A DNA stretch of 64,000 bases, taken from NCBI GenBank assembly GCA_030704615.1, contig CM060731.1:74834001-74898000 (forward strand), read 5' to 3'. How positions within the stretch are numbered: position 1 is the stretch's first letter; the number at the start of each line of letters is the position of its first letter. Under the pieces are notes generated by a model. The model was not told the DNA's origin. It saw only the letters and a program-made list of their open reading frames with translations, and did not search any database. Source of the DNA: Takakia lepidozioides. Lineage: Eukaryota; Plantae; Bryophyta. Below, in pieces: positions 2,628 to 55,800 of this stretch. Both the position numbers and the translations under genes were made by a program.

Positions 2628-5600
2628 ACATCCCGCTCAAACTGGGCGCGGGGTCAATGGCCACAAGGCTACGGCAAACAACGTCTTCATAATGGACAAA
2701 ATTTTGTTCCCCCAGTGTGCCAATGTGTTGATCGACAGAACTGATATTGGTACCTCTGACCACTTCCTGGTTTGGACTGAGATCAAAAGGTGTTTTCCCA
2801 CCACCAAGAGATCTGTGAAACGTTCGATTCGGAAGTGGCGCATAGGAAAATTCTACAATGAGGAGGTCAAGGCTGAGTACGTCCAGGCCTTGCAAGAGGC
2901 TCTCCCTCATTTTGTCCAATCGCTCCAAGAACTTCAGTCACGCTCTGTTAACGCAAGAAATGAAGTCGAAAGAGCAGTGGACTCTTGGGAGAGTTTCGTT
3001 TCCTCCGTGGCTGACAAGATCATTGGGAGGAAACTAATTGTCTGCGGTAGAGCAGTTAATTGGTGGACTAATGAGATTAAACTCAAGATAGCTGAGAGAC
3101 GAGCCCTCTATAAAGAGTGCTGCAATTTGGAAACCAACAGAGAATTGTGGGCGAGGTACTACCAGCTCCGTAAAGATATCAATCAGCTTGTTAGGTCTCA
3201 GAAGAAAGTATACTGGGACAAGTTATACAGTGAAATAAACTCAAACCACCATGGTGGTAATGACAAGAAATTCTGGTTGGCCCTTCAACGTTTGTACAAG
3301 CCGAAAAACGGTCAGCAAGTACAAGCGCTGAAGACTACTAAAGGTGCAGTGGTGACTTCATCGGTTGACATTGTCAAAACCTTTGAAACTCACTACAGTA
3401 TCCTTGGCAGAACTTCTAGGTCTAACAGTGTGGGGTCTTCTGCTGAATGGAGGGACACAGTTGGAAAAACTGTCCCTATGATTCAAACAGCCCTGATGAA
3501 CTGGAGTATATTTCAATGGCTTATAATGCTCCCATTAGTTCTTCTGAGATTGTGGAAGCAATTGAACATTTAAATGGATACAAAGCTGGTGGACCTGATG
3601 GTATTGTCAACGAGCTAATCAAGCACGGTGGCGATCCCATGATAGAGGCCCTAGTTCTCCTCTTTAACCTTATCTGGAAGACTGAAATGATCCCCTTTCG
3701 CTGGCGACAGGGGGTCATTGTCAATCTATACAAGAAGGGTGACAGAGAAGAACCGGGGAACTACCGTGGCATCACGCTCCTCAATGCTGTTGGCAAGACA
3801 TTCTGTAGAGTTATAAGTACTCGTCTCGAGGTTGATCTGTTTCCACGAAGGCCAAGCTGGCTTTCGGCGAAACAGGGGCTGTGTGGATCATATCTTCACT
3901 CTAAGCCAGATTATCCAGGGAAGGAAAAAAGAAGGGAAACCCACTTATGTCTTTTTCCTGGATGTCAAAAAGGCTTATGACACAGTGTGGAGAGATGGCC
4001 TATGGTTCCACCTCTGGTCTTGTGGGATCAAGGGAAAGATGTGGAGAGTTGTCCACAACTTGTATGCTCACACCAAAAGCTGTGTCACTGTTAACGGACA
4101 GAAGTCCAACTTCTTTGACATAGACCAAGGTGTAGCTCAAGGTTGTACTCTCTCCCCTCTGCTCTTCAATGTTTTCATCAATCAACTCCTCGAGGATGTG
4201 GAAAGTGAGGGATTTGGGTTAAGGGTGGGTGATACCACCATACCAGCCCTTATGTTTGCGGATGACTTCGCAGGCATAGGGGAGACTCCAACCAATCTCC
4301 AGGAGTTGATTGATTGCGCGAAGAGATACTTTGATCTTTGGGGGCTAGAGGCTAATGTCAGCAAATGTGCAGTGGTAACATTCAACGACAGAGGAGAGGG
4401 AGGAAGTGATCTTAAGTGGCACTGGGGTAGCCAAGAGATCCCGGTCCTCCCTTCCTACACTTACCTGGGCGTTGAGTTCTCCTCCAATTGTAATTGGGAT
4501 GCACATATCCGGAAAGTTGTTCAAACTGGCAAGGGCAAAGCTCTGGGGCTCACTAAATTTTTCCACTGCAGAGGGGTCAACTCTGAGGTTAAGAAAACCA
4601 TGCTTTGTCGCGTTATTAGACCTGCCTTGGAGTACAGATCTGCTATATGGGTTGATAACTCCAACCAGGCTAAGTCTCTAGAATCCATTCAAGTGGGGGT
4701 GCTTAAGGAGTGTATGTCAGCATGCTCCAAAACAGCCAATGTGGCTGTTCGGGGTGAGTTTGGCATTCCGTCCTTAAGCTCCCGACGAGATGAATTCAAG
4801 GTCAGATGGTGGGGTCAGCTGCAACATATGCCCAACACCAGATATCCTAAGTTAATCGACTCTATATCTTGGAAACAGGACCGCCCTGTCAAACAGGCTA
4901 AGTCCTGGCAGAAGAGAGTAGAAGAGATTCTCAAGGACCTGGACCTGGATCCGCAAGTCTTGACCCTGCTGGATAAATCTGACTTAGAGGCTGTAGTGTC
5001 CTCAGCCATGTCTGTTGCCATGAGATTGTCTGTTGAGAATGAAGTTAGGCAGAAAACTTCCCTGAACTTGTTTCCAGTCTGTGACATGGGGGAGGACATC
5101 TTGGATGACCTCAAGGGTCTACCCACTCTCGGCACTAGACTGAAATTTAAACTCAGGGCAGGAAGCCTACCTTTGAACAGCAAACAGAAGCAGAGAGGAA
5201 AGGGAGAGTGCAATTGCCCGTTGTGTGGGCAATCTGAAGACAGTATTCATTTTCTGATACACTGTCCGGGGTTCTCTCACCAAAGAGACGCTCTCTTCAA
5301 ATCTAATAAGGGAATTGTGCCTGTACCCCTGTTTACCAACTTTGAAAGTCTCGAGGCTGAGCCAAAAGCCCAGGCCCTCCTGAGGCCTAGTTTTTGGGCA
5401 AATCACACACAGCAGATTGATGCTTGTGTGAAGGGATTTCTAGAGGATATCTGGAAAACCCGGATTAATTCTTTATATGGAGGTAAGTCTTACTACCAAC
5501 GTCAGCCCCTGACAGAGGTAGGTTCTGTCCCTTTTGTTCCCGCTCAAACTGGGCGCGGGGTCAATGGCCACAAGGCTACGGCAAACAACGTCTTATGAGT

Positions 5601-5930: not shown

Positions 5931-8900
5931 CCCTTCTAGGGATTTCTAGAGGATATCTGGAAAACCCGGATTAATTCTTTATATGAAGGTAAGTCTTACT
6001 ACCAACGTCAGCCCCTGACAGAGGTAGGTTCTGTTCCTTTTGTTCCCGCTCAAACTGGGCGCGGGGTCAATGGCCACAAGGCTACGGCAAACAACGTCTT
6101 ATGAGTACAATCTCTCTGACCCCTTCTGCTGGGCAGAGTGATGCTTGTGTGAAGGGCTTTCTAAAGGAAATCTGGAATGCCCAAACATGTCTATATCATG
6201 GTAACTTACTACTGGAGTGAGACACAGCTAGCGTCTGCTCCCTTTTGTTCAACCCAACGTGGGTGCACAAAGGTGGCATACAACCATAACCCACTAATTT
6301 CGAAAGTTCCAAGATTATTCTCACTACTATTTGCTGATGTGCTTAATGTACATGTCATTGAAATGCAGGTGAATTACTATATAGTTGTTCCATCATCTGA
6401 CGACTATGCAGAACAACTACATGCACCAGCCACCTTGTGCGGTGTTATCATTGGCTCCATGCCATTGGCTGCTCTTATCTCCTCACTTGTCTATAGCTGG
6501 TGGTCCAACTATTCCTACAAGGCCCCTCTGATTGTTAGCACTTTAATTTTGATATCAGGCAACTTACTGTACGCGCTGGCCCTCTACTTCAACTCTGTCT
6601 GGTTTCTGCTGATTGGCCGGTTTCTCTGCGGGTATCCTTCTCTCACTCGAGCAATATTTTTATTTTTGGCTCTGGTTTTGTTTCCTCTCTCATGTTTTCT
6701 TCCATTTTGTCCCATAAGCTCTACTAGCTTTCCGCGGACGTTATAAAGCACCATTTCATTTCATTTCTCCTGTGTTGTATTGAGTCCTAAGGACCCTATG
6801 GCCCCCTTGTGGCCTCAATAGTTTTTTCTTTTCTTTGTTTCTTCTTTCTTTTTCTCAGTTTGGCCTCAAGGTTGCCAAGTCTAACGAGTGGTTCATGCTG
6901 GCTTTCTTTCTCTCTCTCCCCCCTTTCTGCTCCATCCATTCCGAGCGCAGGCCTTCTGGCCACAATGAGATGTCTCCTTAACCTCATCTTTTGTTCTGAA
7001 GTCTTCCCATAAGCTCTTTGAGCTTATCAAGGATGTTATATAGTTGCTTTTTTCGTTCTGTCTCCCTCTCTTTGAGCTTGCACTCCCCGTAAACATGCAT
7101 TTCTTTCTTTCTTTCTTGGGTTCTGGTTTTGTTCCTCTCTCATGTTTTCTTCCATTTTGTCCCATAAGCTCTATGAGCTTTCCGCGGACGTTATAAAGCA
7201 CCATTTCATTCATTTCATTTCCTCTGGATTATTTCCCCCATATGACATCTGTGTGATGCTTTATGGAAGGTAGCAGCTCCAAATAACTAGGCTTAGTGCC
7301 TGCTACCATTGACCTGAGATATTTGGACCCCATATTTGGCAGTCCAATATGTTTCCCAGGTCATTTGAATCAAGGGTGTATTCTCCCCATAGACACCTTA
7401 CACATGGGAAAGTCAGCTGCTGGAGTCAACTCAAGAACAAGAGAGAGGAGAGTTTCCTGCTCAACTTGACAGGCGCTAACAGGTTATCTCGTGGAAGTCG
7501 CTAGCTATTGCCAGTTTTAGAAACAAGGCATCTGGGAGATTCTCTGAGCTTCCCACGTTCATCTGTGTTTTTTATGTGTGCAGGTTAGGAGGGGCAAGGG
7601 CAATCAATAGGCGTTACATTTCTGACCATGTGCCTGTTAAGCAACTCACAAGTGCATCCGCTGCCTTTGTGAGTGCAAGTGCACTGGGTATGGCAGCTGG
7701 CCCTGCTCTAGCTGGGTTTTTTAACAGAATTAACTTCAAGGTATTCACATCCTTCGCCTGCCACTACAATTGTTCCACAATATGCATTTCTTTCTAGTTC
7801 CCATGTAAATGGAGCATACTCTAAACAGGTTTACTAACATCTTGGTCAATCCTACTTCCTGGATTTTTGCTCTTATTGCTATCCTAAGATTACTGTTTTC
7901 CCTGCAGATTTATGGTGCACCAGTTAATTTCGCCACAGCACCTGGTTGGCTGATGGCATGCGCATGGGGGTTGTACCTCATTCTCACCTTCCTCTTCTTC
8001 AAAGAACCAGCTTCTTCCAAGCCAACCATGAGACAAAACTCTGATAAGGGTATAGACATAACAGGAGTTGGTTCTCCTAAATCAACACTCACCGCCCCGT
8101 TGTTGTCAGACTGTCCTCCCCATTCACTGATTTTTGAGCATAGAAAGGATACTGACGTCGATGATGAAGAGGAGGGGGAAGGGGACGACTCAGACTGTGG
8201 AGATGACAAAGCTGTTGAAACATTGGGTGCACTATTAAAGGAGTTGACATTACCCGTCAAGATATTACTGTGGGTGTACTTCATGTTGAAGTTTGCCTCA
8301 GAGATTCTTATCTCCGAGTCAAGCGTACTCTCTGGATTTTACTTCAACTGGACTTCCTCTCAGGTGGGATTTTTAAGCTACAAGATAATATGTACTCATG
8401 CTGTTCCTTGCAAACGTTGGCTTGCCATAGCCTTACGGTCATTGACCCATGGGAAACGAACCCTCCCGGAGCCTTTTGGTGGGTTTCGCACCCATCAGGG
8501 AAAAGCTTATCCCGGCAGCTCAGCTGCAGGTATAAACTTATTGTCCCACAACTGCCATTAAGGCACTCACAGGAGCACTTGTCCTCATGCAAACTCGACA
8601 GCCAGGTTGCAGCGTTTTTTATTTTAGTTTTATAGCCCTGCGTTTACCACAGAAATGACATGCATGGGGATGTGCAGGGCACCGGAGGCTTCCGCCCGTC
8701 ACTCTGGGTTGCGTGCAGGGTGAAAGCTACAAGATAGAGAATGAGAGACAGGAATATGTGTACCTGCCCTTGGATGGTGATTAAGTGATGTGAGAGGACT
8801 GTTTCAGAGCCTTGATCAAACCCTGCATCCTGAGCTTCAGGATTGTCCAGACCTGGGGCCACTATCAGTTTCTACAGAGAAAGAACAGAAGGTAGCATTA

Positions 8901-13365: not shown

Positions 13366-15258
13366 TTCGACTGCCATCACGTGTTTACTTGATACTTTTA
13401 AGTGCTGCAATAACTTTTATATTTCCGGTTTGTTGTTTATTGTTTTCACGTCGTCTATTATGTTGTTGAAGTCTTCTGAACGGATATTGTTAAGGATTAG
13501 TGCTTCACTTTGAAATGCTGATCTCGACACTGTTAATTTTGCGCCCAGACATATTTGTCTACGTTGCATTAGATTGAACATGAAGAATGGAAATAAGTGG
13601 TGTTTCGAAAAGTCGTGATGGATATCAGTCAGACTCATCAAATACTCAACGTAAGCATCCAAAGTTACTTTAATTGGACGGTTTTTCATTTCGGTTACGC
13701 CGATTCCAAACGGAAATAACGTTGAAAACATGCACACGATCAGTTTTGGGTTTGCGTGGTTTCATGCGTGTATGAAAGGTACATATTTTGTTGTAGTTGC
13801 AATCCATTTAAAGCGTTGGAGATTAGATCGTCGTGCTTTATGTCTATTCCGTCAAAATCGATGAGTCCAGAGGTGTTTATGACGGGCTGGATCGTATCGT
13901 CGTCTTCGTCGATTGATGTTTTTTTGTTGTGCAAATCCATTATGTTGGTACGATGGTCAGCGTTAGCGAAGTCAATATCTGTGGATTCAAACACCGATCT
14001 CAAGATTGATGGTGGAATATCGTTCTCTGGTAGTCCATCCAATATGTCGTTATCAATTTGAATGTCCTTGTAACCCATGTAATTGTTTTTCAACCATGTT
14101 AACCATGTTGTCACTGCAAGTCTACGTACGTATAACAAATTACATGTTTTCACAACGTTAACGAGTGGATGTGAAGTGCCGACAAAGTGGACGGCGACAA
14201 TATCGGATAATGAATCTAAGGGTTGTGGCAATTTGTTCAACAATTCGACCGCACAACCTGAATTTTGAGCAAAACTCACCAAATTTCCTCTCAATGCGCG
14301 TTGTCCATTTCCGCCCTTGTTTACATATCATAATTTGAACAACATCACACGACAACGGTATCTTGTTATTAACGCTTCTTCAACCATGGTTAACTTTGGC
14401 AAAATATTGTGAACTTTTCCGATCCATAAACCGTTAGCGGTTGATGTGTCTCTGCTGCAAACACAACAATACATATTGGTGAAAGTCTCATTACTAATGT
14501 ATTTGTTGAAGTTGGATAAACAAAACAAGTTGTTCTCCAGACATATTTTTGGTGGGAATTCATGATCGTTCTTCGGCTTCTTCGCAAGAGTGCTATACAT
14601 TTGTTCTCGTTTTCTTTTGAGTTTTTCCTTCTATTCATTTTCGTTTGTAATATATTTCTGAATTTGTGCAGCACATATTTTATCTTTGATCAATGAATCT
14701 TGGTTTTTTTGGAATGCATATTTTGTCCTTCGTTTAGCATTTGTTTTGTCTGGATCTATTTCCGTGATTTCTGGTGGATGTTCGAATCTGTATTTTTCCC
14801 GTCATTTAGTATTTGTTTCGTCTGGATCAGAACTAGGTTGAAATTCTATTTCCGTGGTTTGTGGTGAATGTTCCAATCTGTATTTTTCCCTTCGTTTAGC
14901 ATTTGTTTCGTCTGGATCAGGAGTGGGTTGAAATTCTATTTCCGTGGTTGGGTAGTGGATGTTCAAATCTGTATTTTCCCCTTCGTTTAGCATTTGTTTC
15001 GTTTGGATCTATTTCCGTGGTTTGTGGTGGATGTTCAAATCTATATTTTTCCCTTCGTATAGCATTTGTTTTGTCTGTATCTATTTCCGTGGTTTGTGGT
15101 GGATGTTCAAATCTGTATTTTTCCCTTCGTTTGACATTTGTTTTGTCTGGATCCGGAGTCGGTTGAGATTTACATCTTTTCCGTCGCTCATCATTTAGTT
15201 TCTCTTTATTTAAAGCATACTTTTCTCCGTCTCTTAGCATTAGCAAAAAAAATTTCAT
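13366..15258 (-). pseudogene. Helitron2/Helentron-like RepHel, block 1 (N-terminal repeats, DUF6570-like and Helitron_like_N regions)
   Basis: ANGLWIG..LPKLTMVEEALI..RGNLVSFAQN..LYVRR..V..WL.WLK.N..Y; FSTLFPFGIG; HHLFPFFMFNLMQRR. Contains frameshifts and stops. Confidence 0.8.
14725..15170 (-). repeat. Coding tandem repeat, ~6 units of 72 or 90 bp (DPDKTNAKRREKYRFEHPPQTTEI)
   Basis: cttcgtttagcatttgt-type starts at about 14728, 14801, 14890, 14981, 15053 and 15125. Confidence 0.85.
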
Positions 15259-16679
15259 TTTAATTTGGAGTTATACACTCTGGAAATATATTTCACAAAT
15301 AAGTAATTGTATTTTCAGTGGACATGAGCCTTTTGATAAGATAAATAATGACTGTATAGGTCTATATGAAATTTTAACGGAAATAATTGTTTTTAATAAA
15401 AACTCATTTGTCTTGATAAAAACAATTGTTTCTGATAAAAATCATTCGGCTTGATAAAAACCAATCTTTGAAAAAAATCATTTGTCTTGATAATGGTAAC
15501 GATAATGATGATGATGTTGATATTGATAATGATCTTGATAAAAGTGATAGTGATAAAATTGATTTTGATATTGATATAATCAGTCTTGACACCTTTCACA
15601 GTGGCACGTTCAGCGGACGATTTGCTGCCTGAACCATCACCCCACCCCACAACCATAAGTTTCCACTCATGACATTTAATATCAGAAAATTCTAAAAAAT
15701 GTACTACTGCCACTGCTCATCTGTCAGTCCCAAGTATTATGTGACCAAGCTTCTTTTCCTCTTCAGCTACTCTCTCGCGCCCTGGAAAATGAAACCAAAC
15801 AAATCTTAACGTCTTTACTTTCTGGAGTACACTGCAGAGTGTAAACACATAATTTCTATTTCAATAATGAATAAAAGGACGAGGAAGGAATCAAGATTGT
15901 GGTTGAAATGTGATAATACTGTCAGTCCCAAGTATTATGAAGGTTTTGGAAAGGATTAGAGGTTGAACCTGGTCATCAATGTCATTCACGTACAGATTCA
16001 TTTGCTCTTTTTAATGTATTATGCCACATGGAATGCTCCCTTAGGCTTTATATTGTTGTTCCCAAGGTCCAGACTAGTTATTTTTCCTGCAATGGAGGAG
16101 CGGGTGCTGGTTAATCCATGAAATCCTCCTTCCGCACTGACTTTTGAAGGAAACACACATCCTGACAGAGTTCCTTCAGTTGCTCATCATAAAATCACCT
16201 TTAGGTGCATCCATCTGTATAGAGGGCTGCATGAACCATGACGTTGTGTGATCGAGTGCAACAAAATTGTGTCATTCATTAAAAGCATTACTGACTACTT
16301 TATAAGACTGTTTGTGTCTCTACAATTGATGCGTATCACTTGCTAATGGTGCAAAAAATTCACACCTGGCATGGACATTGTTCACAAGTGGGTTATCTAG
16401 ACATACTTTGCCTTATGTCTCTTCTTGGCTCTCCTCCTACCCTCTCTCTTCCAACCATCCTTCAAGCTACACTCAGTTGGGGAAATCTGTGGTCAATGTC
16501 GTAAATATGAGAGGGAAAGCAGTACACAAATTGCGTGATTTGATTGAACAATAGATATTCAACAACTCGTGAAACGATCACAACATACCCTTATGAGCCA
16601 ACAATCCAGTCACTAATTCAACAGTTAAATCAGACTCTGCCGATCTCCTTCCACCCAAATGGGACAGATGGAGCTTTAA

Positions 16680-18075
16680 CTATACATGTTGAGACCTTTG
16701 CATGCTCGATGCTCCCACATTTGGCGTACATGTCCACCAGGGTATTGTTCAGGATCACATCTGGTACGATTCCAGCTCTGACGATGTCGCCATGCAGGTC
16801 TCTTTGCCCTTCCCTTTTCCAGGGCTGCCAGGCTTGCACGCGCACACAAACATGATGTGGTCGGGCTTGACCCCTTCCCCCATCATTTGCTCATAGGTCT
16901 CCAAAGCATTCATACCACACCCATGCTTGGTAAATCCTGCCAACATTATATTCCATGTGATCAAAGATCGTTGAGGCATTCTGTTGAACACGTGGTGAAC
17001 ATCCATGATGCTCCGCACTTAACATACATGTTGACAAGGGTGCCGAGGAGAAAAACATTTGGCGTGAATCCACTTTGGATAATGTGAGTGTGCACCTGCT
17101 TTCCAGCTTCCAGGCCTTTCACCTTTATGCACTTATGCAAGAGACAAACATACGTTTCTGAATCTGCTGAAATGCCTCCTTGGTTTAAAGTCTGTAGAGC
17201 CTCTTTCAGTCTGCCTGCCTCACAAAGCATCTTCACATGCCCAGAAGTGCCAGAAGAGGCATTGTGGACTCCCTCTCTTGATCCTCTTCTAGAGGCTGTG
17301 GTCATGGTTGAGGTGCCTGATTTTATCAACTGTGCCACTGCAGCTGCTGCCTTTAGTTGACCATCTACCCATGCAGGTTTTTTGTAGCTATTGATCCACA
17401 GGGAATCATAGGTAATCTTGTGCTTGAAATTTGGCCCTCTTGGATGATTATGTACATACGCTCTACCCCTGCTTTGGCATACATGTCCACCAGGGTATTG
17501 TTCAGGATCACATCTGGTATGATTCCAGCTCTGACGATTTCGTCGTACACCTCTTTGCTCTTTTCCAGGGCTGCCAGGCTTGCACATGTATTGCAAACGC
17601 ACACACACGTGATGCGGTTGGGCTTCACCCTTTCGCACATCATTTGCTCATATGTCTCCAAAGCCTCCATCCCGCGCCCTTGCTGTGCATATCCTGCGAG
17701 CGTCGCACTCCATGACACCACAGCTCATTCCGCCATATTGTCGAACACTCCCTTTGCATGCTCGATGCTCCCACATTTGGCATACATGTCCACCAGGGTA
17801 TTGTTCAGGATCACATCTGGTACGATTCCAGCTCTGACGATGTCGCCATGCACCTGAAATGCCAGAAGAGGCATTGTGGACTCCCTCTCTTGATCCTCTT
17901 CCAGAGGCTGTGGTCATGGTTGAGGTGCCTGATTTTATCAATTGTGCCGCTGCAGCTGTTGCCTTTAGTTGACCATCTACCCATGCAGGTTTCTTGTAGC
18001 TATTGATCCATAGGGAATCATAGGTAATCTTGTGCTTGAAATCTGGCCCTCTTGGATGCTTCTGTACACACACTC
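16680..18075 (-). pseudogene. Shuffled fragments of a PLS-class pentatricopeptide repeat gene
   Basis: PPR motifs (YVCLLHKC..LEAGKQVH..II.SG..PNVFL..LVNMYVKCG; VSW.A..AGYAQQG.G.EAL..YEQM; NTLVDMYAKCGSIEHA), internal duplications and frameshifts. Confidence 0.85.
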
Positions 18076-19325
18076 TACCCCTGCTCCTTCAGCTATCCAT
18101 GCCTCTGCACAAATCATGCATTTATCCTTGCCTTGCTGCTAACAACAGACAATGACAGCCTAGATTTGTTCTAGGAAACACCCAACTCAGCTTATCACAC
18201 TAGTTCCTATGCTCATTGCGTCTGCTACTCTCTGTAATCCAACAGGCATTCACCTTTCTCCGATGAGAAACATAAGTCCTCGCCATCGAACACGAGGTCA
18301 AGTGGATGTCGTACCTAGCGGAGGGTTTATTGGACGAGGAGGAAGTGCAGCCTTCTAATCCTTTCTTTTAGTGTTCCAGCCAGCAACCCGTGGAACAAGC
18401 TGATTGCAGGTAGCGGTTTCGTCTACTGGTTTCTTGAATCAAGTTTACAAAGACGATTCGGTTGGTTGCGTATGTCATGTCACTAGTCTTGTTTTGCTAT
18501 GTATCTGAGGATAAGCTGCAAAATGAACTCAACTGAGCACCTGGGACCTCATCAAGGGACTTCCACGAATTTACCGAGGTTAAGCGGAGATACAACTTAG
18601 TTCATTCTCTATGTGACAGTGACAATGACAACCTAGATTTGTTCTAGGAAACACCCAACTCAGCGTTCCTATGCTCATTGCGTCTGCTACTCTCTGTAAT
18701 CCAACAGACATCCACCTTTTTGCCTCGATTGTCCCACCATTGACTGTGGTCAGAAAGTATTCTTTCCACATCTTCTCCTCGTCTCTCTTACCTGTTTCTG
18801 GATACTTTGGCAGTATCATGTCAAAGTCACTCAAACTATCAAAGGTTCACTCAAACAGCTAACTTGCAGAATTCAACATGAAAATTTAAGGCCAGTTCTG
18901 ATAAGAGGGAACCCACACTCCATCCCTGCTCCTTCAGCTATCCATGCCTCTGCACAAATCATGCATACATCCTTGCCTTGTTGCTAGCAACATACAATGA
19001 CAGCCTAGAATTCTTCCAGCAAACACTCCAACCATACTTATCAGACTAGTTTATGCTGACTTGCATCTGCTTCCAACAGGCATTCACCTTTTTGTCTCCA
19101 TTGTCCCACAATTGACTGGCTTCGGAGAAATGTTCATTCCAAAGCTTCTCCTCGTCTCTCTTATTTGTTTTTGGATACTCTCATGCTGCCACATTGGCAC
19201 TAACTTGTCAAATTCATTCCAAACCACCACACATCCACTGCAACATATGGCAAATGAAATGCTATAACTTGGGCGCAGACACTATATTCAATATGCAAAT
19301 TTAGGGCCGAGTCTGATAAGAGCGC
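18075..19325. repeat. Patchwork of diverged duplicated blocks (18075-18260, 18625-18910, 18915-19325)
   Basis: Shared words such as ccctgctccttcagctatccatgcctctgcacaaatcatgca, ttcctatgctcattgcgtctgctactctctgtaatccaacag and ctgataagag. Confidence 0.7.
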
Positions 19326-19332
19326 AAAACAG

Positions 19333-20684
19333 GTTGAAAGCAGTTGCGCAACACAAAGGAACGAAATATTCAGCATGATGCAACGGAACACCAAGCTTAT
19401 TCTTCACTTTGAATCCAGCATTCGTACATCATCCTTTGGTGTCCCTGCTAAGTGGAAACGACATCGATCTTGACATTTTTTTCGACGTCAACCTCCCAGA
19501 CCACAATGAAAGGCGTGCAATTGCCACTATGAATCCGAGATCCCAAGCTAAATTTGTACACATCATGGTCAATGCAGTTTTTAAATACCTCATGCGTGTC
19601 AGAGATACTGCCAAAACTACCACAACAAATACAGGAGTACTTGGAAACATAAACGTTTATTACGGTTGTTACGAAACGGCGAAAAATGGTTCACTTCACC
19701 TACACACATTGCTATGGCTAGAAAATGCCCCAGATCCAAACGACCTCGTACAAAAACTGAAAGACGATAAAGAATTCAAACGCAAAATGTTGGCATATTT
19801 GGACAACATCATAGTAGGTGACTTGGTCCAATTCAAATCCGAAATACCAGTCGACGACAATATTCCACCCACTATAATTGACCCCAACAACGAAGAAAAT
19901 AATGTAAACACCGAAATCCATTCTTGTACTATTGGGTCTCCCGATGTTCACTCTAAAAAATTTCATGCTGACTTTACGCTTGACGTTTCAAAACTGTTGA
20001 ATGTATGCAATCGCCACATTTGCAACCCCGCGTGCTACAAAACCAACAAAGATGTTTTTAAAAAGAATTGTAGATACGGATTTTTCGCTGTCTTAGTTGA
20101 AGAAACGCATTTCGACGACGAAACCGGACTACTGCATATAAAACGAACCGACAGATGGTTGAACAACGCAAATCCATGGATGTTAGTATCAGAAAGATGC
20201 AACCACGATTTGAGATTCATCGGTGCTTCAGGGAAAGACGCAAAGGCTCTTATATACTACATCACGGATTACATCACAAAATCTTCCGTCTACACATCAC
20301 ACATGTATTCGCTCTTGCAAATAGTCGTAAAAAAGATCAAAACGACTTATGACGATCTATATTCTGAACATTCAGTTGAGAAAAGTCGCAAATTATTGAT
20401 CCGATGTTTAAACACGATCGGATCGCAACAAGAGATCTCGGCGACAAGGGCAGTCAGTTACCTTATGAAATATCCAGACCATTTGACAGACCACTAGTTT
20501 GCATATCTACCGTGGTATAGTTTATCGGCATGGATTCGCGAACGAGAACAATCTCAATCAAACGAAGATGGAAGCAACGATCTGAACAGCACACCTGACG
20601 ATAACAACCCCAAAAACACTTTTGAAACGTTCAAAGTCGAAAGATCCAAGCAGAATGACAAGTTGATTATGTATAATTTCCGCT
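19333..20684 (+). pseudogene. Helitron RepHel, block 2 (HUH Rep nuclease domain)
   Basis: Motif 1 PSLFFTLNP, motif 2 YETAKNGSLHLHTLLW and motif 3 YYITDYITK; also NRHIC...CYK and CNHDLRFI. Confidence 0.88.
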
Positions 20685-21869
20685 CACGGAATTTTCCGCT
20701 CACGGATTCTACTCACGGTTTAGCAATCCCCAAGTTCTGGCTCTTCCCTCTAGAGACAAACTGCTCCTTAGGGCCAAAATAGGTTCATGTTGTTCTACTA
20801 TAACACTTGCAATGCAAAGTTAACCTCCCCAGTAGTCATGACCTGCAATGCACATGGTCTATATCAAACAGTCGAGTGACTATTGAGTGACTATGTTAAC
20901 GAGGGTGTTTACTCCATGAAAAGCGAGCCTTTCCCTCCTCTGCATAAGCTGCTACTTGACAAGTGCAAGATGGTTGAAGGGACTCAGTACACAGACTGCC
21001 TTCAACTTCGTGCAGGGAGGACAGGGCCCCTTCATCGCAACAAAGCCATATACTGCTTGTACAATATTGACTTCAGACCACACGCAACCATAAAATGTCC
21101 CTCTTTAGCCCAGTTTTATATTTGAAAATTAAAGTTGAAGTAGATCAAGAATCTAAGAATCTTGTAGCTCTCCACGACCAAAGACTGGGCTTTGGATCTT
21201 GGAATGTCGTTCAGAGTCATCGGTTTTGCTCGAAGAACCGACATCTTGGAAGTCTGGTGAGCCCCACATCACGCAAGGATACAATGGAACATAGACAGTG
21301 TGATAAGAAACAAGGCAGTGCTAACGAAGGTACCTTCTTCAACCCATTTAAGCCTGGTTTTCCCCGTTATTAGAGTCGTCCCTAACAAATCATGAATACT
21401 TGCTGCTAGCAGATGACACTGATGGCGTGAAGTTCTTCCAGCAAGCACCCCAACCCCTATTACTACAGTAGTTCCAATTCTAAATTGCATCTGCTTGTCT
21501 TTGTAGTCCAACGGGTTTGTCTCCATTGTCCAGCCATTGACTAGGGTCGGATTGGAGGTTAGTTCGGCAATTTTCACACCAAAACCTGAATCTTGTTTCT
21601 GGAATCGCTATGCTTGATAATCGCACAGTAAGTAAGCAGCTCTAGGGTCGAAGCCTTTCGCTAGTCCCGCAAATCAGTCTCTCTCTCTCCCCCCGCGTTC
21701 AGTTCTCTCTCTTCTTGTGCTTCACTATTCCCCCTCCCCACGTGTTCACTACTCTCTCTCTCTCCCCGCGTGTTCACTACTTTCTAGACAGATTCGTTTT
21801 TATTATTTAGGCACCTCACCTAGGTGATTTCCAAATATTAGGCATGTATAACAATCGACCCTTGGATAA

Positions 21870-22065
21870 AAAAGAAAAAGAAGTATGACGCCTCCCGAAG
21901 GAAACGTAACTTATGGAGTCACTTCACCCCGAAGGGCTACTGCCTTCCGCTAGGAAGGTGGACACCTTCATGACACACCAGACCGTGGTTTGAACCCACA
22001 ACCATATCCAACGTGGTATGTGCCCATTACCACTAGGCTACATGCTGGTTGTCAATAGTCAAAAG
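21870..22065 (-). mobile_element. tRNA-derived SINE, same family as 10154-10337
   Basis: Minus-strand A-box tagcctagtgg and B-box ggttcaaacc. 15-bp TSD tcgacccttggataa at 21855-21869 and 22066-22080. Confidence 0.88.
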
Positions 22066-22458
22066 TCGACCCTTGGATAATAATGAACAGTTATTTTTTA
22101 CCTCCCTAAAAAAAAATTATTAAAAAAATGTAATGGTTTTGAAAATAAAACTTGCCTCAACAATTGTTTCTGACCTCCCTCAAAAACTATTATGTAGTTG
22201 CATCAATGTAAGCCTTTTGGAAGTTGTGTGGACATGAAATTCTAAATGGTAGGCATTTTTTTTCCATTTTTTGAACTTTAAGAAATATAATTTAGGCATT
22301 GTTCCACATATTTGGAAATTTTGGTATTTTTCACAATTTTTGATCTACTAGGCACTTCTCAAGATAGTTTTCCAAGTTTTAGGCACATTTTCCAAAAATG
22401 TTCTAAACCCTCCAAAGCACCCCGACACTGAGGTGGAAAGAAAAAAACAAACGTCACG

Positions 22459-25400
22459 TCATCTCAGGTCTTCGTATTGTGAATGTTGTTTTGGAAATGG
22501 ATCAATTCGTCGGTTGTTTATGCAATCTCTCAAGTGGGTTCTCATGGCGGATATTGCGTATCGGGAATGTGCGGGATCTAATCCGAATGCTATATCCGTG
22601 GCATAAGCTATCGCAAATACGCCACAGGATGAACAGTCACTTTGTTGCATGACATCGGCATAGAGATAATTGAATTGTGGGACTGGGATTAATTTTCTTA
22701 GATGTTGTTCTATTTCCCTCGGTAGCTTCTTATCCGCGGGCATGCTAGAATCAAACACCGTACATTGATAATTCGTTCCATTCGAGTTTATCGTGGTTAA
22801 AATCCAATGGTTATTGTTGACGAACACGTGCTGCAGACTTCGTTCTGCCCAGTAGAGTCGAATACGCATGTTGCTGGTAGTTTTGTGTTTCCAATTCCTG
22901 ATCAAATAGAATTTGCATGTCGGCCGCCAAATGCTGGTCACACAACCATCCGTTATCATCCAACAGGATTTGCTCGTCGTGCGTCGTCAATAGAAGATCT
23001 TCGTGCCAATATGTTTCTTGGAGCACATCTACATTTTATGTGTCGGATTGTTCATCTTCGAAATCGATTTCTATGATTTTGACCGGTGTGAGAGATAATT
23101 CTGAGCAAGTTCGGTTTTCATTTGGTTCCATTGGTGTGAGATGTTCGGCTTCAAAATCGGTTACCACTTGCATTTTTTCAGACGCATGTCTCGGTTGGAT
23201 TGGATGTGGATGTGGCGTTTTGATGGCAGTGTTGGTATTCACCGTGCTGATGTGTTCTGTGGTCTTGTGTGATTTTTGTTCTTGGACATTACAACCGGTT
23301 TGTGGAGTCATGAACTGCAGTGAGCCTGTCTTGAATTTGGTTGTCTGGATGTCTTTGAACTTAATGTCCCGAAGTACTAGTCCTTGTAGCGAACGCAAAC
23401 GAGACAGTGTGACGTAAATGTTGTCCATATTCAAGGGGTGTCCATCTGGCGATTTTTGTAAGTCGATGATTATTCTGTCGAAAGTTTTGCCTTGGCCTTT
23501 GTAGTCGATTATGCAATAGGCGGGTATCAGAGGCAATTCGTGTCCGCTGATTTTGAATTTCTTTGGTTTTTTCAATTCATCCTCCGTGTGGTGATAATCG
23601 AACGTTCTTGAAATGGGTGTAATCGGCACTACGTTTTTTTAAAGATTTTCTAAATTTATGTCGCTCAATGTTTGATGTTGACTGATGAATTCGCTGAAGT
23701 CGATTAATACGTGATTTGGTGGGTGCATCAAGTTATCTTCACGTACGATCTAATTGTCTTCTGTTGTCGAGATCCCCACTATTTCTCCGACTGCACCATT
23801 TACAAGCCCCAATCTAGGATACAAATTGTCGGTGAACATAACTGTCATTCCTTTGTACAATCTCAAAAATGGAAGAAGGTTGTGGCTTCTATTCCTAGGT
23901 ACGGTTTGTCGGATTGCGAATTAGAACTCGTCGCGGAGTGTGTGCTTCTTGTAGGTGTCTGTGGCTACTATGGTGTAGGATGCGTGACTAGATTTACGTG
24001 TGTTATATTCTATCATTTGGTGATTGATGGCGTTCTTTAACTGGTTACGAGGTACGAGGTACGTTGCTTTATCCCAGGTTTCGTTGAACATGTTGACTTT
24101 CAGGTTCGACATGAATCTTGTCTGTAATAATTCAAAATCCGTTTGGGTGAAGTTATCTTCGCATATATTCTGTAGCAATTTCGCATATTGTACATCGTGG
24201 GCTTGCCTCATTTACTAGGTCAATATGATTGTGTTAGGGAGTATGTAATTTTCCATAGGCTTTTGCCTATAATTTTTTTCTGTGTGTATTTTGTGAATGT
24301 GAATATGAGATGTATGTTGGTGGAATAGAGAGGCGCATCGGTAACTGGTGGAAACTGCATGAAATCGCCCATGAACATTATGTTGAGTCTTTCGAAGGGT
24401 AACATGTTTGATTTGAATTTTTGTAATTTCAAATGAATATCGGCAATCATGTTGCATCCGACCATATATACTTTGTCTATAATCAAATAGTCAGTTCTAG
24501 ACCATTCGTTTATAAAAAAAATTGTGTCGGATTCATTGACACTCCGGTTGATTTTGAGTCCCAATAGAGCGTGGATGGTTGATCCACCTATGAGGGTTGC
24601 GGCATTGGCTGTGTAAGCACCAATTTTCAGGATTTTTGGTTTCTTGGTTTATATAAAGTACGTTTGGATTGCTTTAATTATTTCGGTCTTTCCCATTCCG
24701 GCAACACCTCCCACATACATTAACGTTTGTTTCCTTACATCGAAATGGTGATTTTGTGGATCTATGAAACGTTTAAATGCTGATTCCTGCAAAGTGTTGA
24801 GCTTGTATTTTTTCATGACAGAAAATTTAGTTATTTGATGTTGATCTCCATTGTGCACGATATTGGGAACTACATCGTAATTGTCATCATCTTGAATGTC
24901 CATTGGTTTGTTTTTTGGAATTTCTCTCAATTCTGGAATTTTGTGGTGAAGGTTATCGTTTTTGAATGACTGAGTTGCATTTGCGAACTCGTACAGTTCA
25001 TTGTCAATGCCAATGGGCGGATTTTTGGATTTGCGTAATGTTTTCAACCATTTCTTGGTTTGGGTTCTATTTGATTTTTTGGATGCAGTTTGGATTATTC
25101 CTATTTTTGGTGCGGTATGGGGTTGTGGTGATATTTTCCCGTTGGTATCCGTAATGAGCTTGTTGGTAACTTCGGCCACATATTTGTTTTCGCTTGTATT
25201 GTACATAAGATATTCGATTTGTAGCTTCTGGCCTTTTGTGACTATGTCTTCTGTATGTTGTGACGCCGAATTGTCGTCTATATATATTTCGTCGTTATCG
25301 TCTTCGTGCATTTCGTCTGGCATCTCATTGTATAACGGTCGATGTTGATGTCTTATGCATTCTCGTCATTGTCTGGATTTTCGTTCTTCAGTAACAGTCT

Positions 25401-25794
25401 GTCGGAGTCTCGTGATTCTTTGCATTCATGCAACATGTCGATATTTGCGATGATTTTTCTATTGAATTCCGAACATATTGGATATAGTTCGTCGAGAGAG
25501 TCTTCCCAACTTTGTTGTGATTTTGGCTTTAAGTCGTGGATAGATCTCCATGGCATGAATAGAATACAAACTGCACGAGTGTACATTGCTGCATCATTTT
25601 TTTTCGAATGTATTTTGTAGCCTTATATTACCGGCATTTTGGTTACTTGAGATTCATATACACTATGGGTGTCACTTTGCGGATGTTCATGCATGAATTT
25701 GTAGTAGTATGGGCTTTTCACCTTGCACGATTTACAGTAGAACTCGTAAGGTGACATTTCCCCGAACTTGTGTGGCATGCTTTGGTAATCAAAG
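22459..25794 (-). pseudogene. Helitron RepHel, block 3: Pif1-type SF1 helicase followed by a C48/Ulp1-like cysteine protease
   Basis: GGVAGMGKT (Walker A), YLIIDKV.MV, MGDFMQFPPV, MRQAHD, PAYCIIDYKGQGKTF and YVTLSRLRSL. The C-terminus has GWLCDQH, NNHWIL, FDS and QQSDCSSCGVFAIAYA. Confidence 0.88.
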
Positions 25795-25949
25795 AGATAA
25801 GAGTCTTTTAAGATCAATGTAGCCAATGACTTCATTTTGCAATCCATGATGCAGGGAAGTCGGTAAGTTGCCGTTCTAACCACTCTTTGGTTTATATTGG
25901 TGGTTGAGAAAATAAATATATAGTTGTTTGAAGTGACGTGACATGTGCC

Positions 25950-26123
25950 CTGTGGGTCAATCATGAGAGGCCAGCGGGTGCTGCGAGTTACTAGAACCCC
26001 ATTTTCTATGGAAAATGCATCAGCAGGAAGGCCTTGTAGGTTCCATTCTCTCACATCTCCAGCATCGGATAAGAATGACACAAATGTGAAATTTGGTGAA
26101 GATGCAATTTCTAGTTTTTGGAC
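25950..26123 (-). pseudogene. Isolated exon of an axonemal dynein heavy chain (DNAH2/I1-beta-like, ATP-binding/AAA5 region)
   Basis: FLSDAGDVREWNLQGLPADAFSIENGVLVTRSTRWPLMIDPQG, preceded by a ttgtag acceptor. No other dynein exons were recognised nearby. Confidence 0.85.
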
Positions 26124-29100: not shown

Positions 29101-30969
29101 CATTTACCTCGGTCTGAGAGAGAAAGCCACAGTTCTATAGATTAGCGTGATTAATTTTAAAGTCGCACTCTTAGGGTTTAATTCTCCTCAAAAACCCACC
29201 GATATATACTTTAAGCTGCCCCCGCCTCTCTCTCTCTCTCTCTCTACACCATACATACAAACAACCATGTCAACATTGGAAATAGCCGACACAATAACAC
29301 TGTAACAGACCAAGAAATAACCCACCAAGACATGACAAACGTGATATACGACAGTTTCACGTCCAATGACCATCATGCCCTAAAGGTAACACATGGAAAC
29401 GCCTGCCCAACAGTACAAACTTCCACAACGCCTTGTGGAACGTCCCTTCGGACCGTGAAGAAATAACAATCTTCGTAGATATTGCAAAATTCCCCTACTT
29501 GGCAAAACCGGGAATTACAGATTCGTGACTTTCGCCGAAGAACTAAAAGACGCAAAATTCACAATATTAATAGAAGACAGCCATTTCATGTTCGACTACA
29601 CAAAAACAATAACGGAATGGTCCGATCATTGGAGGAGGAGAGGCGAGGACATGAGGTGGATGGGTGGAAACAACATGAGCTTCACGAAAAAAAACTCCTA
29701 AAAAATAACGCAAACAACTCTGGCTCGACGTCCGGTAACAACAAATGTCAAAAAACAAACAACGACGAGATGTACAATACAATAGAAGTCCTTAACAAAA
29801 ATGGCCAAAAAATGGATGGAGAATCCGTACGTTCAGGGGATCTCGTTGCAATCAAGTGTAACATCCGATATTGGATGAATTTCGAGCCGCGGGAGCGGCG
29901 AGAGTATTCAGGGCCAAATTACAACCGGTAACCTGCTGACTCCCACCTGCTACCTCACATAACCAGTTTTAGGATAAGTTGAGCTGTTAGATGTTTTCCA
30001 TGTGTGTCGTCCATTCCTTAAAATGCTATGTGCATTGTCCGATCAATTGAGCCCTTATTTGACATGACAAGCTAAAACGGTCACTCTACCTACCTATCTC
30101 TTCGACCTTGTTAAGTGAGGGATTAGCATTCACTTTATGAGGTCCGCTTTCTGTGGAGTCATGCAGTGGGAAATGTTTGAAGGGCAATGACTATGGGTTA
30201 TAACCGAAGTCCTTAGAATTAGAGAAGGACACATTGGCAAGACCCATCCACATGGTAGGTAGGAAAAAATTGAAGGGCGAAGAGTATGGGTTATATCCAG
30301 CGTCCTCAAAGCCAATAAAACCATGACACATTGGCAAAACTCATCCTAAAACTAGTTGTGTGGTTCAATATACTTTACATGGAAGAGAGAGAGGATTTCA
30401 TACATGTCAAATGTATAGGAGGAAGGGCATGAGTGGAGGGCCTTCCGCCATATGAGGGCCGTAGACGAGGGCGGTAGCCCGAGACCAGGTCCCGAAAATG
30501 GCGGAAGGGCATATACAATGGCCTTTCTCCTGCGTAAAGAACTATCCAAGGGTTTGCCCCTATTTCTTTCCACCATCTTTATCTTTCCAAGTTCTATCCA
30601 ACCTATGTCATATCGTCGTGCTAGCTTGTCAGAGCGACCAACCATACTATCATTCTTACTTGCTAAGCATTGTGATTTTGTGAATATCTTCGTGAAGTAC
30701 CTAATGAACAACATGAGATGAACACGCTTGAATGGACAAACAAGCTGCAGACTTAGCAGACGCAAGTGAATCGCTCTGAAGAGGTGATGCTGCACTTAAC
30801 AAATGAGCCTTGCAGGGAGGAGATCGACACATAAGCAAGAGGCACTCCGCAGCAATGTCTAGAGTAGGTGGCTCCAAACTTCGAGATATCTTGAGAACGA
30901 GAAGTTATATGTAAATTTCCACACAGTTTCTTCGCAGAATAACCTTCCAAACCCTGGACAACAGCCATC

Positions 30970-51849: not shown

Positions 51850-54800
51850 TAGTGACGTGGATTTTCTACTGTCTATCGATCCGCATCACAACCCAACCAA
51901 AGTGGAAGCATGTTGTCTTTGTGAGGAATATTAAGACCACTTGCTGCTGTACCTTTTAAGTATCTAAAGATACATTTGACTACCTGCCAATGTGCTGGTC
52001 TCGGATATGAGAAATGTTGAGATACTATCCCCACTGCAAATGCTAAAGTAGGGCGGGTATATATCATAACATAAGCTGTCAAAGAGCCCACGACTTGTTG
52101 ATAAGGGACATGATGTTATGATTGCTTCCACAACTTCAGCTGTTTGAGGGGCTTGAGTTTTATAAGGTTTAAGATTGATTCCAAGGGAGTGGCGACACAT
52201 TGGCATTGTGTCATGCCAAATAGAATAAGTTTCGATTTAATATAGTGAGCTTGAAATAGAAAAATAGTACGTATCAGCAGTGCGATTACAAAAAATTTAA
52301 ATTCAATAAATAGTGAATAGGTCCGTGATCAATCATCTCCAAGGCTGATTTTAACTTAGTCTTGGTATGATGTAAAAGTGACTGATTATCACAAACCAAA
52401 ATTTCATCATTTGTACGTATAGTGCAATAATCAGTCGGGGCGTCCTTGAATATAGACATTCTACGCCAATCGTTTAAATCCAGGATAAGGTAACAATCAA
52501 TTTTTTCGTACCAACCACATGAAGCTTGTTTAAGACCATAAAGACTTCAAAGAAGTCAACACACTTGATGTTCATTGTCTGCTTGCACAAAGTCTTTAGG
52601 TTGTCTCATATGGATTTCTTCTTTGAGTTGGCCGTGTAAGAAAGCTATTTTTACATCCATTTGGTAAACCTCCCAGTTGTAAATTGCATTGTAAATTGCA
52701 GCTAGGGCTAAAAGAATGCGAATGGAGGTAATCTTGACCATGTCAGAAAAAGTATCATGGTAATCAAGACCTGTATTTTTTTTCGAGACTCTCGTGTAGA
52801 AAAATACTCAAATCCTTTCATTCTATCTGCCATCCTTATGGCCTTATCTATAGAGGGGTTCTTGTCTCTCTACCTCTTTATTGATGATTGGCTTTACTCC
52901 ATATACAAATTTAATTAATCTGTCCAATGGAGTCAAATCTTCTATGCCCAACATACAACTTCGATACTGACTAACATTATCCCCTCAAAGAGTTTGTTGT
53001 AGTCGATACCATAACTCTCTCCATTTTCAAAATTGCATTGATGGGTGTAAATTCTTCTAAGAGTCAGTTTCTAAAATATACCCAGAAGCTCAAGCATTTC
53101 TTCTCTTCCCAATATTCTGCTTTATCCATCCATCGATCTGAATAAAATCCCTTAAAGAATGTGCTTACAAATTTCACCATCTGCCATACTTCTTGCAACA
53201 GTAGCATACTACTCTATGGAAAATAGCCAAAGCTCACACTCTTTTCTATCTTTCTTCCCATAGAATTCTGAATATGACTTGTTGCCTAAGAAGAGAAGTC
53301 GTTGGGCCATGTCGGATGCGGATGAATTCGATGATGAAGTGTCGCAACCGTTCATATCTCCCTCGGAGAGGATGGATGTAGGTTGACACTAGAATACAAA
53401 GGTAGCAAATGTTTTTAGGTAATAGAGTTCATAAATTTACTGTGATACAAGAACAATTTCTTTACTATTTAATCTAGGCAAGTAAATTCTATCTTATGAG
53501 AGTCTAAGAGTGTAAGCTAGTTATAGTGTTTTTGCCAGGATTTAATCTCCAACATGATCTCCGTGTAATCAAGTTGTGGCTGCCGGATATTCGGTCACAT
53601 TTTCTAAGCAACATGTTATCTTAGAGAGCAGTGGTGGACGGATGCTCATGTTGAATGAGGTGGGTTTTGGTGGTCTAGTTACAAGGTTGGCTCATTTGGC
53701 CCTAAAGTCACGACTAGCTTGAGAAAGTTAATGGATCCACATTTGGCCTTAACTGTCTCTAAGCCAAGCCTACACTATTCTAGTATCGTTTGGCGCCAAA
53801 TCTTTGGGGGTGAGGCTATCACTATAACAAATTATTTACAAAATAAATTACTCACAAAGACTATTGTCACTCCTGAGGGGATTTGGATAGGCCAAAACCT
53901 AATTAATGTCAGTCATTTGCAAATTTTAGATTGTCATGCATATGCCCACATTCCTAAACAACAACAGAAGAAGCTAGATGCTAAGAGCCGTAGGTGCAGG
54001 TTTCTGGGATATAGCATTGATGTAAAGGGTTATCGCCTCCTTGACATTGACACTCGAAAGATTTAGTATCAATTGTGATGTTGTCTTTCATGAGGACCAA
54101 CCCTCTCTCTAGTGGGAGTCACAATCTATTCCAATTAAGGAACCGGACACTTTTCAAGTGGGGGATGTTACGGTACCTATCCATCCTCTCCCACCCATTG
54201 TGCCCACTTGTATAACCTTTTCTCCCTTCACCACCTGTAGTGGCTATGGCTTTACCCCATATTCCACCACTATCTAATGTGATAGGTACTTATGTGCACA
54301 TTTCTTCTGCTGGATCTCTTGTTCTCCCCTCTAGAGGCGCAATGGACGTCCTATGATAAATCCAGGTTATTCTCATTAGATGATATTCAACATATTGCTG
54401 AGATTCAGTCATTCATACCAGAACATGCAGATCGTTCAGCCTCATGAGTTGATGGTCCACCATTTTCTGCCCTCACTGGCTTTAACATTTGGTTCTCAAC
54501 AAGATACAAGGTCTAGTCGCCTAGTCAAACCCAAACCTAAGTATATTCATTATCATGAACGTCGAACTTAGACTTGTCTCATGACTGAGCCATTGTTTTA
54601 CCAAGATGCTTCGACAAGGCCCGATGTTCACCATTGGTAGGCTGCAATTGACTCTGAGTTTCAATCATTGATGAAGAACCATACTTGGAAGCTTGCTGAT
54701 CTACCAGTAGGATGCAAACCTGTAAATTGCAAATTGGTATTTAATTGAAGATGAAGCCTCATGGAACAATCAAGCATTACAAGGCTTGGCTTGTTGTGAA

Positions 54801-55800
54801 AGGACATTCTGAAATATGTTTATAAAAAATTAAGCTTGATCAGTTTACCTATTTGAGTTTTTGATTATTGAAGATGCTAACAATTCTCGTCTTCATCCAT
54901 CCAACACGGTTGAGTTCATGATCATATATAAATACATGGTATTACATCAATAAAGCTATAACTTCAACAAACAATATGTTTTGAATTTGAAGTTCATCCA
55001 TGTAGGTGACCCCACTGATGCTACTTGTTTTAGAAGTTTAAACTCATGTATATGACTTTTCATATCAACTCCTTTACTCAAACTTCAGTTTACGTCTTAG
55101 TTTGTTTAAGCATACTTCTGGCATCTCCAACACCATTTTTGTCAAGGTGTGTAGGATACTATTAACTGTCTTACTATGCCATTATCTTTACGAAATTGAT
55201 CAAAGGCATTTGCAGAGACAAACTCCGAGCAAACTCCCCGCCATTGTCTGATCTTAGGGTTTTCCGGGTTTATCCTGTTTGTTTCTGCGTAAGAACCTTA
55301 TACTCTTTAAACTTCTCTAGAATTTATTTTTTTTGTTTTAGGAAATTGACAATGGTTCTTCTTGAAAAAACATCGATGAATGGGACAAAATAGATAGCTC
55401 CCCCAAGTGATGTGGTTTGCATAGGGCCACAGATATATGAATGCACAATCTTTAATAGAATCTTTGCACGTTGACCTCCGTCCTTCAAGAACTGTTGTCT
55501 GCGTGCTTGTCTTCTATACAACCCTTGCAAAGCTTAGTATGTTCCACCTCCTTTAAAAAGAGCCCTTCCACTAGGTTTAATTCTTTCAATTATTTGAGTT
55601 TCTTAGTGTTAATATGCCATAGCTGCCTTCTATGCCACAGTTTTGTATCTGAGATAGTCTTTTTCAAATGACTCCGTAACAAGTGCTCTTCTGATTGTAT
55701 TATGAATGTGTAACTTATACAAATTGTTTACCTTGATAGCTTTTGCTACGACATTTTCTTCAACATTGACTGTTCTTGAATAATACATTATATCCAGCTA
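51850..55800 (-). mobile_element. One degenerate Ty1/copia pol in three blocks: A 55096-55800 (-), B 53790-54816 (+, inverted), C 51850-52778 (-)
   Basis: A: VHSYICGPMQT..FID..RSDNGGEF..RSML. B: WGEA..NYLQN..KKLDAKSRRCRFLGYS..YKAWLVVKG. C: GLDYHDTFS.MVKITSIR..QMDVKIAFLHG..TRPTLAFAVG. Confidence 0.8.

Follow-up and report, generated by a model that had tools for sequence, protein, structure and literature searches.

How does the gene of a single transposon come to lie in three pieces on alternating DNA strands, and how well do the pieces fit once they are turned back? The question is raised by a Helitron RepHel gene in the bryophyte Takakia lepidozioides, found in a stretch of 64,000 nucleotides (assembly GCA_030704615.1, contig CM060731.1, positions 74,834,001 to 74,898,000, forward strand), here called the window, whose own coordinates are used throughout. 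The original prediction, made from the letters of the DNA alone, held that one element had undergone two inversions in place. The codon-exact junctions and a minimum of two reversals described below support that claim. A single Helitron almost certainly lies behind the three blocks, because both junctions fit to the codon when compared with relatives that carry the gene on one strand. It is likely, moreover, that one Helitron copy of the HLE2 group had its outer fragments inverted in place by breakage and rejoining.

A RepHel gene in three collinear blocks

A profile built from 30 full-length RepHel relatives (aligned with MAFFT) and run over all stop-to-stop pieces in the six frames of the 64-kb window resolves the RepHel-protease gene into three collinear, non-overlapping blocks on alternating strands (Table 1). 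Specifically, profile positions 225-685 fall on the minus strand at 14612->13441 in four frame pieces (block 1), positions 735-1089 on the plus strand at 19385->20494 with an E-value of 1.7e-109 (block 2), and positions 1239-2007 again on the minus strand at 25595->23186 in six pieces (block 3). Each profile position is used at most once, and the same six-frame scan found no second RepHel copy in the window. Comparison of ten full-length relatives with the window by tblastn gave an identical pattern in all ten, with the N-terminal third at 14.6->13.4 kb (minus), the Rep core at 19.38->20.6 kb (plus) and the remainder at 25.7->23.1 kb (minus). The family is large: an exhaustive protein search with the 362-residue open frame of block 2 returned 2252 relatives at E<=1e-3, many of them 1700-2400 residues long.

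The domains follow the same order. Block 1 matches Pfam DUF6570 (E 1.9e-15, 57.9 bits against a cut-off of 24.3), and block 2 matches Helitron_like_N (E 1.2e-7, 32.6 bits against 28.9). The open frame of block 2 (19409-20497) carries the motifs HLHTLLW and YYITDY, that is, the HUH motif and the catalytic tyrosine pair that mark the Rep of Helitron-like elements. Downstream of Rep, as in such elements, follows a PIF1-type helicase in block 3; one fragment of it scores under the Pfam cut-off (E 3.8e-5, 23.8 bits against 25.9), and the region is matched by profile positions 1537-1667 at E 3.2e-36, with a Walker A motif in GVAGMGKT. A Peptidase_C48 match (E 2.9e-4) stands at the C-terminus of block 3, whose stop codon is 22459-22461. 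The stretch 14613-15258 of block 1 is drawn from its open reading frame (ORF) alone and lies outside profile coverage. Within it, at 14713-15170 on the minus strand, the RepHel N-terminus consists of 72-90-nt tandem coding repeats (..KTN.KRREKYRFEHPPQTTEID..; repeat family D1), a part that the relatives' profile does not reach.

The gene is a pseudogene with at least ten frame breaks, and the copy is not autonomous: its profile match comes in 11 pieces, with stops and frameshifts, on two strands. One such lesion, in which 5 nt are missing near 19380 shortly past the first junction, shifts the frame of block 2 and is ordinary decay, apart from the junction itself. Profile mapping and Pfam domains thereby bear out the places and strands that the original prediction had assigned to the blocks, and the peptides it quoted do translate; the blocks are nevertheless not open frames, with stops or frameshifts in each, and the 14613-15258 part stands beyond the profile.

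The closest relatives for which genomic context is available lie on metagenome scaffolds (L001, L002/L003, L004, L005 and L006) and show ~50-65% protein identity; L002 and L003 are one locus, 99.985% identical. In L001-L006 the profile places all RepHel parts on a single strand and in order, and the arrangement in the window is therefore derived. In L002, 7861-9295 matches window 14558->13387 (block 1) and 10600-13704 matches window 25799->22489 (block 3), with identities of ~54-64% for block 1, 49-64% for block 2 and 36-58% for block 3. L002/L003 also hold, at 18914-19190 on the minus strand, a PPR-like sequence that resembles the PPR sequence of the window, and because of it the metagenome scaffolds are probably plant (bryophyte) DNA.

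Table 1. Positions of the blocks, the segments between them, the junction footprints and other features of the window.
Feature	Position	Strand	Basis
Block 1, N-terminal RepHel: DUF6570 and start of Rep region	13366..15258	minus	profile, Pfam, tblastn
Hexamer copy 1, GTCGAA (V-E), end of block 1; plus strand TTCGAC	13366..13371	minus	direct reading
Segment X, turned with block 1: AT-rich low-complexity DNA, PPR pseudogene, high-copy tandem repeat	15259..19332		ORFs, Pfam, repeat families
Hexamer copy 2, GTTGAA, start of block 2	19333..19338	plus	direct reading
Block 2, Rep (HUH nuclease) core, uninverted	19333..20684	plus	profile, Pfam Helitron_like_N
16-nt direct duplication AATTTCCGCTCACGG / AATTTTCCGCTCACGG; first copy straddles 20684/20685	20675..20705	plus	sequence
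Segment Y, turned with block 3; DNA after the stop codon of the gene	20685..22458		repeat families D6, D7, D10
Block 3: linker, PIF1-type helicase, C-terminal Ulp1/C48 protease	22459..25794	minus	profile, Pfam, L002
Dinucleotide CT, common with 20683-20684; single count restores ..NFR-FDYQ..	25793..25794	minus	direct reading and alignment
Reverse-transcriptase ORF (RVT_1)	3832-5598	plus	
Sugar-transporter fragment	6177-6746	plus	
Copia integrase, N-terminal half	55727->55077	minus	
Copia integrase C-terminus to start of reverse transcriptase	~53740->54810	plus	
Copia, remainder of reverse transcriptase	52807->51876	minus	
Retroelement protease and reverse-transcriptase ORF (aspartyl protease families and RVT_1)	59380-60753	minus	

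Junctions that fit to the codon

Whether the blocks were once contiguous can be read at their inner edges. The junction sequences were joined in local scripts only, with ~30-50 codons on each side, and aligned to relatives. At junction 1, block 1 ends in ..KHVMAVE (minus strand, to 13366) and block 2 starts with VESSCATQRNEIF (plus strand, from 19333). The distance from ..V(P)GS.. to ..RNEI.. is constant across the 30 aligned relatives in the columns displayed, and a single VE at the junction gives the spacing V+11=R(N) found in all 30 relatives shown. Against ten relatives, the joined sequence with one VE reaches a summed score of 398 and is gapless to nine of them, while both VE copies give 305 and no VE gives 376, each with internal gaps. 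The hexamer GTYGAA that encodes VE is as such present in one copy too many, as an inverted pair with a single C>T difference at a CpG.

At junction 2, the end of block 2 (..LIMYNFR) and the start of block 3 (FDYQSMP..SPYEF) are in frame when the dinucleotide CT is counted once; its position at the edge of block 3 is ambiguous by 2 nt (plus strand AGAG). Distant relatives vary in length at this point, hence the closer copies L002 and L006 are decisive; L001 was dropped as a reference, the copy being degraded or deleted there. With CT shared, the 52-residue peptide of the window, FETFKVERSKQNDKLIMYNFR-FDYQSMPHKFGEMSPYEF, aligns without gaps to L006 (score 94; peptide YEIFIVDKNSSNQQYIIHNFRIDYQHRLIHFYFLCPYEF, with ..IIHNFRIDYQHR..CPYEF facing the junction) and to L002 (score 100). 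When the two ends are abutted unchanged, the frame is broken and the scores are 26 (L006) and 40 (L002). The original prediction had described the spacing at junction 1, a hexamer at both ends differing by one CpG-type change, and an in-frame join at junction 2 over a shared CT; the relatives agree with the first, direct reading with the second, and the gapless alignments to L006 and L002 with the third. It had further asked for an alignment of the joined protein to intact RepHel copies; against the relatives, the 30-50 codons taken show no large gaps or overlaps at either junction.

Footprints at the breakpoints

What did the breaks leave behind? Both junctions carry an inverted duplication, 6 bp (the hexamer) at junction 1 and 2 bp (CT) at junction 2, which would fit staggered breaks that were filled in. 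At the new joint next to block 2, there is in addition a 16-nt direct duplication, and immediately 3' of 20684 the DNA reads CACGG AATTTTCCGCT CACGG. The 12-mer TTCCGCTCACGG occurs at 20678 and 20694 and nowhere else in the whole 64 kb (chance expectation 0.23; two or more matches in 0 of 100 shuffles), and its copy at 20678 combines 7 nt from the gene with 5 nt from the DNA joined to it. The duplication across 20684/20685 may thus be the trace of slipped or templated synthesis during end joining. Taken together, the three footprints, that is, the 6-bp and 2-bp inverted duplications and the 16-nt duplication, favour true breakage followed by end joining.

Homology-driven inversion was considered as well and set aside. 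A repeat search of the window found no inverted repeats of at least 20 nt at any breakpoint, and ectopic recombination between such repeats is therefore an unlikely cause of the flips. At the outer breakpoints (..CACCGTCTCC and ..GCGCAAAACAG), neither terminal inverted repeats nor the ends of a transposon can be recognised.

A probable course of events with two reversals

A breadth-first search over signed block orders gives two reversals as the minimum, one of segment X with block 1 (13366-19332, 5967 bp) and one of block 3 with segment Y (20685-25794, 5110 bp). Blocks 1 and 3 are collinear with the uninverted reference, lie on the opposite strand and join block 2 without loss or gain, as inversion in place implies.

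These observations suggest the following history. The copy would originally have lain on the plus strand, in the order upstream DNA, block 1, block 2, block 3 and downstream DNA, with a RepHel gene that comprised DUF6570, HUH Rep, PIF1 helicase and a C-terminal Ulp1 protease. Four breaks within 12.4 kb would then have opened the locus, two of them in the gene, after ..VMAVE and after ..YNFR, and two outside it, one ~4 kb before the start of the gene and the other 1.8 kb past its stop codon. Subsequently, 13366-19332 and 20685-25794 would have been religated in reverse, with the 1.35-kb middle piece unmoved. The breaks in the gene were presumably staggered, and filling them in would have produced the 6-bp and 2-bp inverted duplications; repair would have proceeded by end joining and would have added a short duplication at 20675-20705 through templating or slippage. 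The flips probably came later than the insertion of the copy, whose gene has since become a pseudogene that decays by C>T.

A single event with four breaks would leave the same pattern as two inversions in sequence, and the adjacency of the two flips speaks for linkage between them or for a high flip rate. There is no indication of a function for the rearrangement. The proposed history makes a concrete prediction: other copies in the same genome should have ..GCAGTCGAAAGCAG.. and ..TTCCGCTTTGATTAC.. contiguous, with the hexamer present once and no 16-nt duplication.

Segments X and Y and their copy number

The original prediction had placed PPR and other foreign DNA between the blocks, and both PPR sequence (~16.7-18.1 kb) and very high-copy repeats (18.07-19.32 kb) are indeed found there. 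Segment X holds repeat families D2-D8, D10 and D14-D17, and a PPR pseudogene at ~16695-18085 on the minus strand, recognised from ORFs and weak Pfam PPR matches. The pseudogene has internal duplications of 233 nt at 94% and 102 nt at 99% identity. The high-copy repeat follows as tandem units at 18066-19322, the last of which stops 10 nt before the breakpoint 19332/19333. It is also present at 21399-21551; its units measure ~370-460 nt, are both tandem and dispersed and end in ..CTGATAAGAG. In segment Y, the repeats recur in segment X and at 10.2 kb, with a self-match of 21869-22053 to 10336-10155.

Copy number was read from short-read Logan contigs of four runs of one sample, over window positions 17000-22999 only. 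The summed contig depth of the high-copy repeat is 1e5-9e5, against ~50 for single-copy parts. The PPR pseudogene stands in a stretch of very deep coverage as well, so that PPR-like sequence here may belong to a high-copy repeat. The tandem repeat itself may be a retroposon resembling a short interspersed nuclear element, since an A-rich tail follows the units in other copies. Over 20820-21088, a contig with 9 differences and ~2.5x single-copy depth was found, and segment Y is therefore partly repeated in the genome. Over 20284-20494, in block 2, a contig with 8 differences has ~6x single-copy depth, and the genome therefore contains several family copies near 96% identity. Where the window departs from the multi-copy contigs in run X1, 25 of the 48 differences are A/T in the window and G/C in the contig; this pattern, together with the C>T in the hexamer, fits an old, methylated copy that decays by C>T.

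Weighing the alternatives

Several observations weigh against a history of two inversions in place. After re-inversion, no match, repeat unit or feature spans either outer breakpoint. None of the contig pieces listed (short contigs, 17000-22999) bridges 19332/19333 or 20684/20685, and exact scans of metagenome contigs for 20684/20685 and for the predicted ancestral junction 1 gave 0 matches, the species being perhaps absent there. That two independent inversions of 5-6 kb should adjoin is improbable as a coincidence, barring a link between them or frequent flips. A further difficulty is posed by an SSB-like ORF on the plus strand (29482-29931), which lies 3.7 kb past the right breakpoint. Its counterpart in L002 (6823-7226; tblastx 33-44% identity, combined E 7.9e-10) is a frame that shares the strand of RepHel and lies within ~0.6-0.9 kb upstream of it. 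The SSB-like gene is absent from segment X, and its position in the window is not predicted by two inversions; if it is taken as the upstream gene, the signed-order search requires four reversals. It is more likely that this ORF comes from a neighbouring or tandem copy, or that gene order differs within the family. Scans of PHROGs and Pfam assigned no family to it.

The lack of bridging contig pieces would also suit an assembly artefact, in which the assembler or scaffolder misoriented two ~5-6-kb segments of a locus that is in truth collinear, and so would the Copia element in the same 64 kb, which has a flipped middle too, a density that is high for natural inversions. The window contains no N, however, so no scaffold gap lies at any junction, and there are no flanking inverted repeats that could have misled the assembly graph. 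A flipped contig, moreover, would not yield imperfect inverted duplications or a 16-nt junction duplication, and the fact that the latter straddles the novel joint argues against a wrongly oriented segment. We therefore regard a misassembly as unlikely. The clustering of all four breakpoints within 12.4 kb of one element could point in another direction, namely that the element was rearranged during rolling-circle transposition or in one replication event with template switching, and that this form was then inserted or copied and may be common to other copies. Short stretches of microhomology or duplication at the joins, along with the templated-looking duplication, are in keeping with such an origin, as is the presence elsewhere in the genome of parts of block 2 and segment Y, at ~96% identity and 2-6x depth. 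Yet duplicated segments, the usual result of template switching, are not seen, segments X and Y are not element DNA alone but include PPR sequence and high-copy host repeats, and between 17000 and 22999 no contig of another copy was seen across a junction; we consider this origin quite improbable.

Finally, three fragments of three different Helitron copies might adjoin by chance on alternating strands, in a region that is rich in transposons and in a genome with several copies of the family. Against this stand the two junctions, which compared with relatives have neither overlap nor gap, to the codon, and the identity to L002, which is similar for all three blocks. Two exactly complementary truncations in a gene of ~2000 codons would be expected, by a rough estimate, about once in 10^6-10^7, and a chance meeting is accordingly very hard to credit. 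The inversion of two outer fragments in place by breakage and rejoining thereby stays the probable explanation.

Other content of the window and significance

The whole 64-kb window is rich in transposons. A Copia-type pol at 51876-55727 has its middle on the plus strand and its flanking parts on the minus strand. This flip is real at the coarse level; by simple arithmetic, its joins hold ~0.27 and 0.93 kb of extra DNA and are less clean than those of the Helitron. The two elements raise the question whether a recurrent process flips stretches of 1-6 kb in place, leaving inverted duplications of 2-6 bp by homology-free joining of staggered breaks, with two such events in the Helitron and another in the Copia element; for now, we hold this idea to be doubtful.

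A fragment resembling a dynein heavy chain exon lies at 25943-26081 on the minus strand (ORF 25623-26081; Pfam AAA_9 positions 1-38, E 6.9e-14). Its last residues, ..IDPQG, are followed by a splice-donor-like GT, and it runs in frame into the head of block 3, apparently by chance. A motif scan of segments X and Y and the flanks for more dynein exons, as a test of orientation, found only this one exon in the window.

The Helitron is a well-preserved molecular fossil, and knowledge of Helitrons as such is unchanged by it. Its value lies elsewhere: the breaks fell in a conserved gene, so that each inner breakpoint can be set to the base and the repair footprints read, which is seldom feasible where small inversions lie in repeat-rich plant DNA. 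If kb-scale flips should prove unusually common in this genome, they would indicate either a distinct repair or nuclease activity or a systematic fault in the assembly, of concern to its users.

Comparison with known systems

Which of the described systems does the locus resemble? The element itself appears to be of an ordinary kind, and its sequence supports the label of a Helentron-type (HLE2) Helitron, as the original prediction had proposed with its Helitron2/Helentron label. DUF6570, which here lies N-terminal to Rep, is a marker of the HLE2 (Helentron/Helitron2) group, HLE2 elements are found in land plants, among them HelenSM92 of the moss Sphagnum magellanicum, and the extra domains that are captured recurrently include Peptidase_C48 (HELIANO paper, PMC11417382). 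Like HLE2 elements such as HelenSM92, the RepHel of the window combines an HUH Rep, a PIF1-type helicase and DUF6570, and its protease is a recurrent extra domain of that group. Unlike the HLE2 reference, the gene is a pseudogene in three parts on alternating strands, with no OTU domain seen in the window RepHel; the AP-endonuclease, a strict Helentron feature, has no counterpart either, as no endonuclease family is among the Pfam matches of the ORFs scanned and an Ulp1/C48 protease ends the gene. The terminal features of HLE2 elements (12-16-nt terminal inverted repeats, 3' stem-loop and TT insertion) play no part in this class assignment.

For the rearrangement, three known processes offer themselves. 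In Ac/Ds elements, alternative transposition with reversed ends creates kb-scale inversions and leaves the target-site duplication inverted at the two breakpoints. That process, unlike the events in the window, needs transposon termini at one breakpoint, and the outer breakpoints here show none. End joining of the polymerase-theta type places a short copy of break-adjacent sequence at the repair junction, and the duplication at 20675-20705 resembles such a templated insertion as a footprint, from which the enzyme itself is not inferable. Inversions in Drosophila, in turn, reportedly arose via staggered breaks that left inverted duplications at both breakpoints. Such staggered-break inversions are of chromosomal scale, with duplications that usually measure from tens of bp up to kb, whereas those of the window are 6 and 2 bp long and the inversions span 5-6 kb, two of them back to back. 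The Helitron nevertheless shares their main traits, namely no long inverted repeats and a break-site sequence that is present once per end, in inverted orientation (GTCGAA/GTTGAA and CT/CT). Inversion by breakage and rejoining is itself a known process, rather than the mark of a new type of element.

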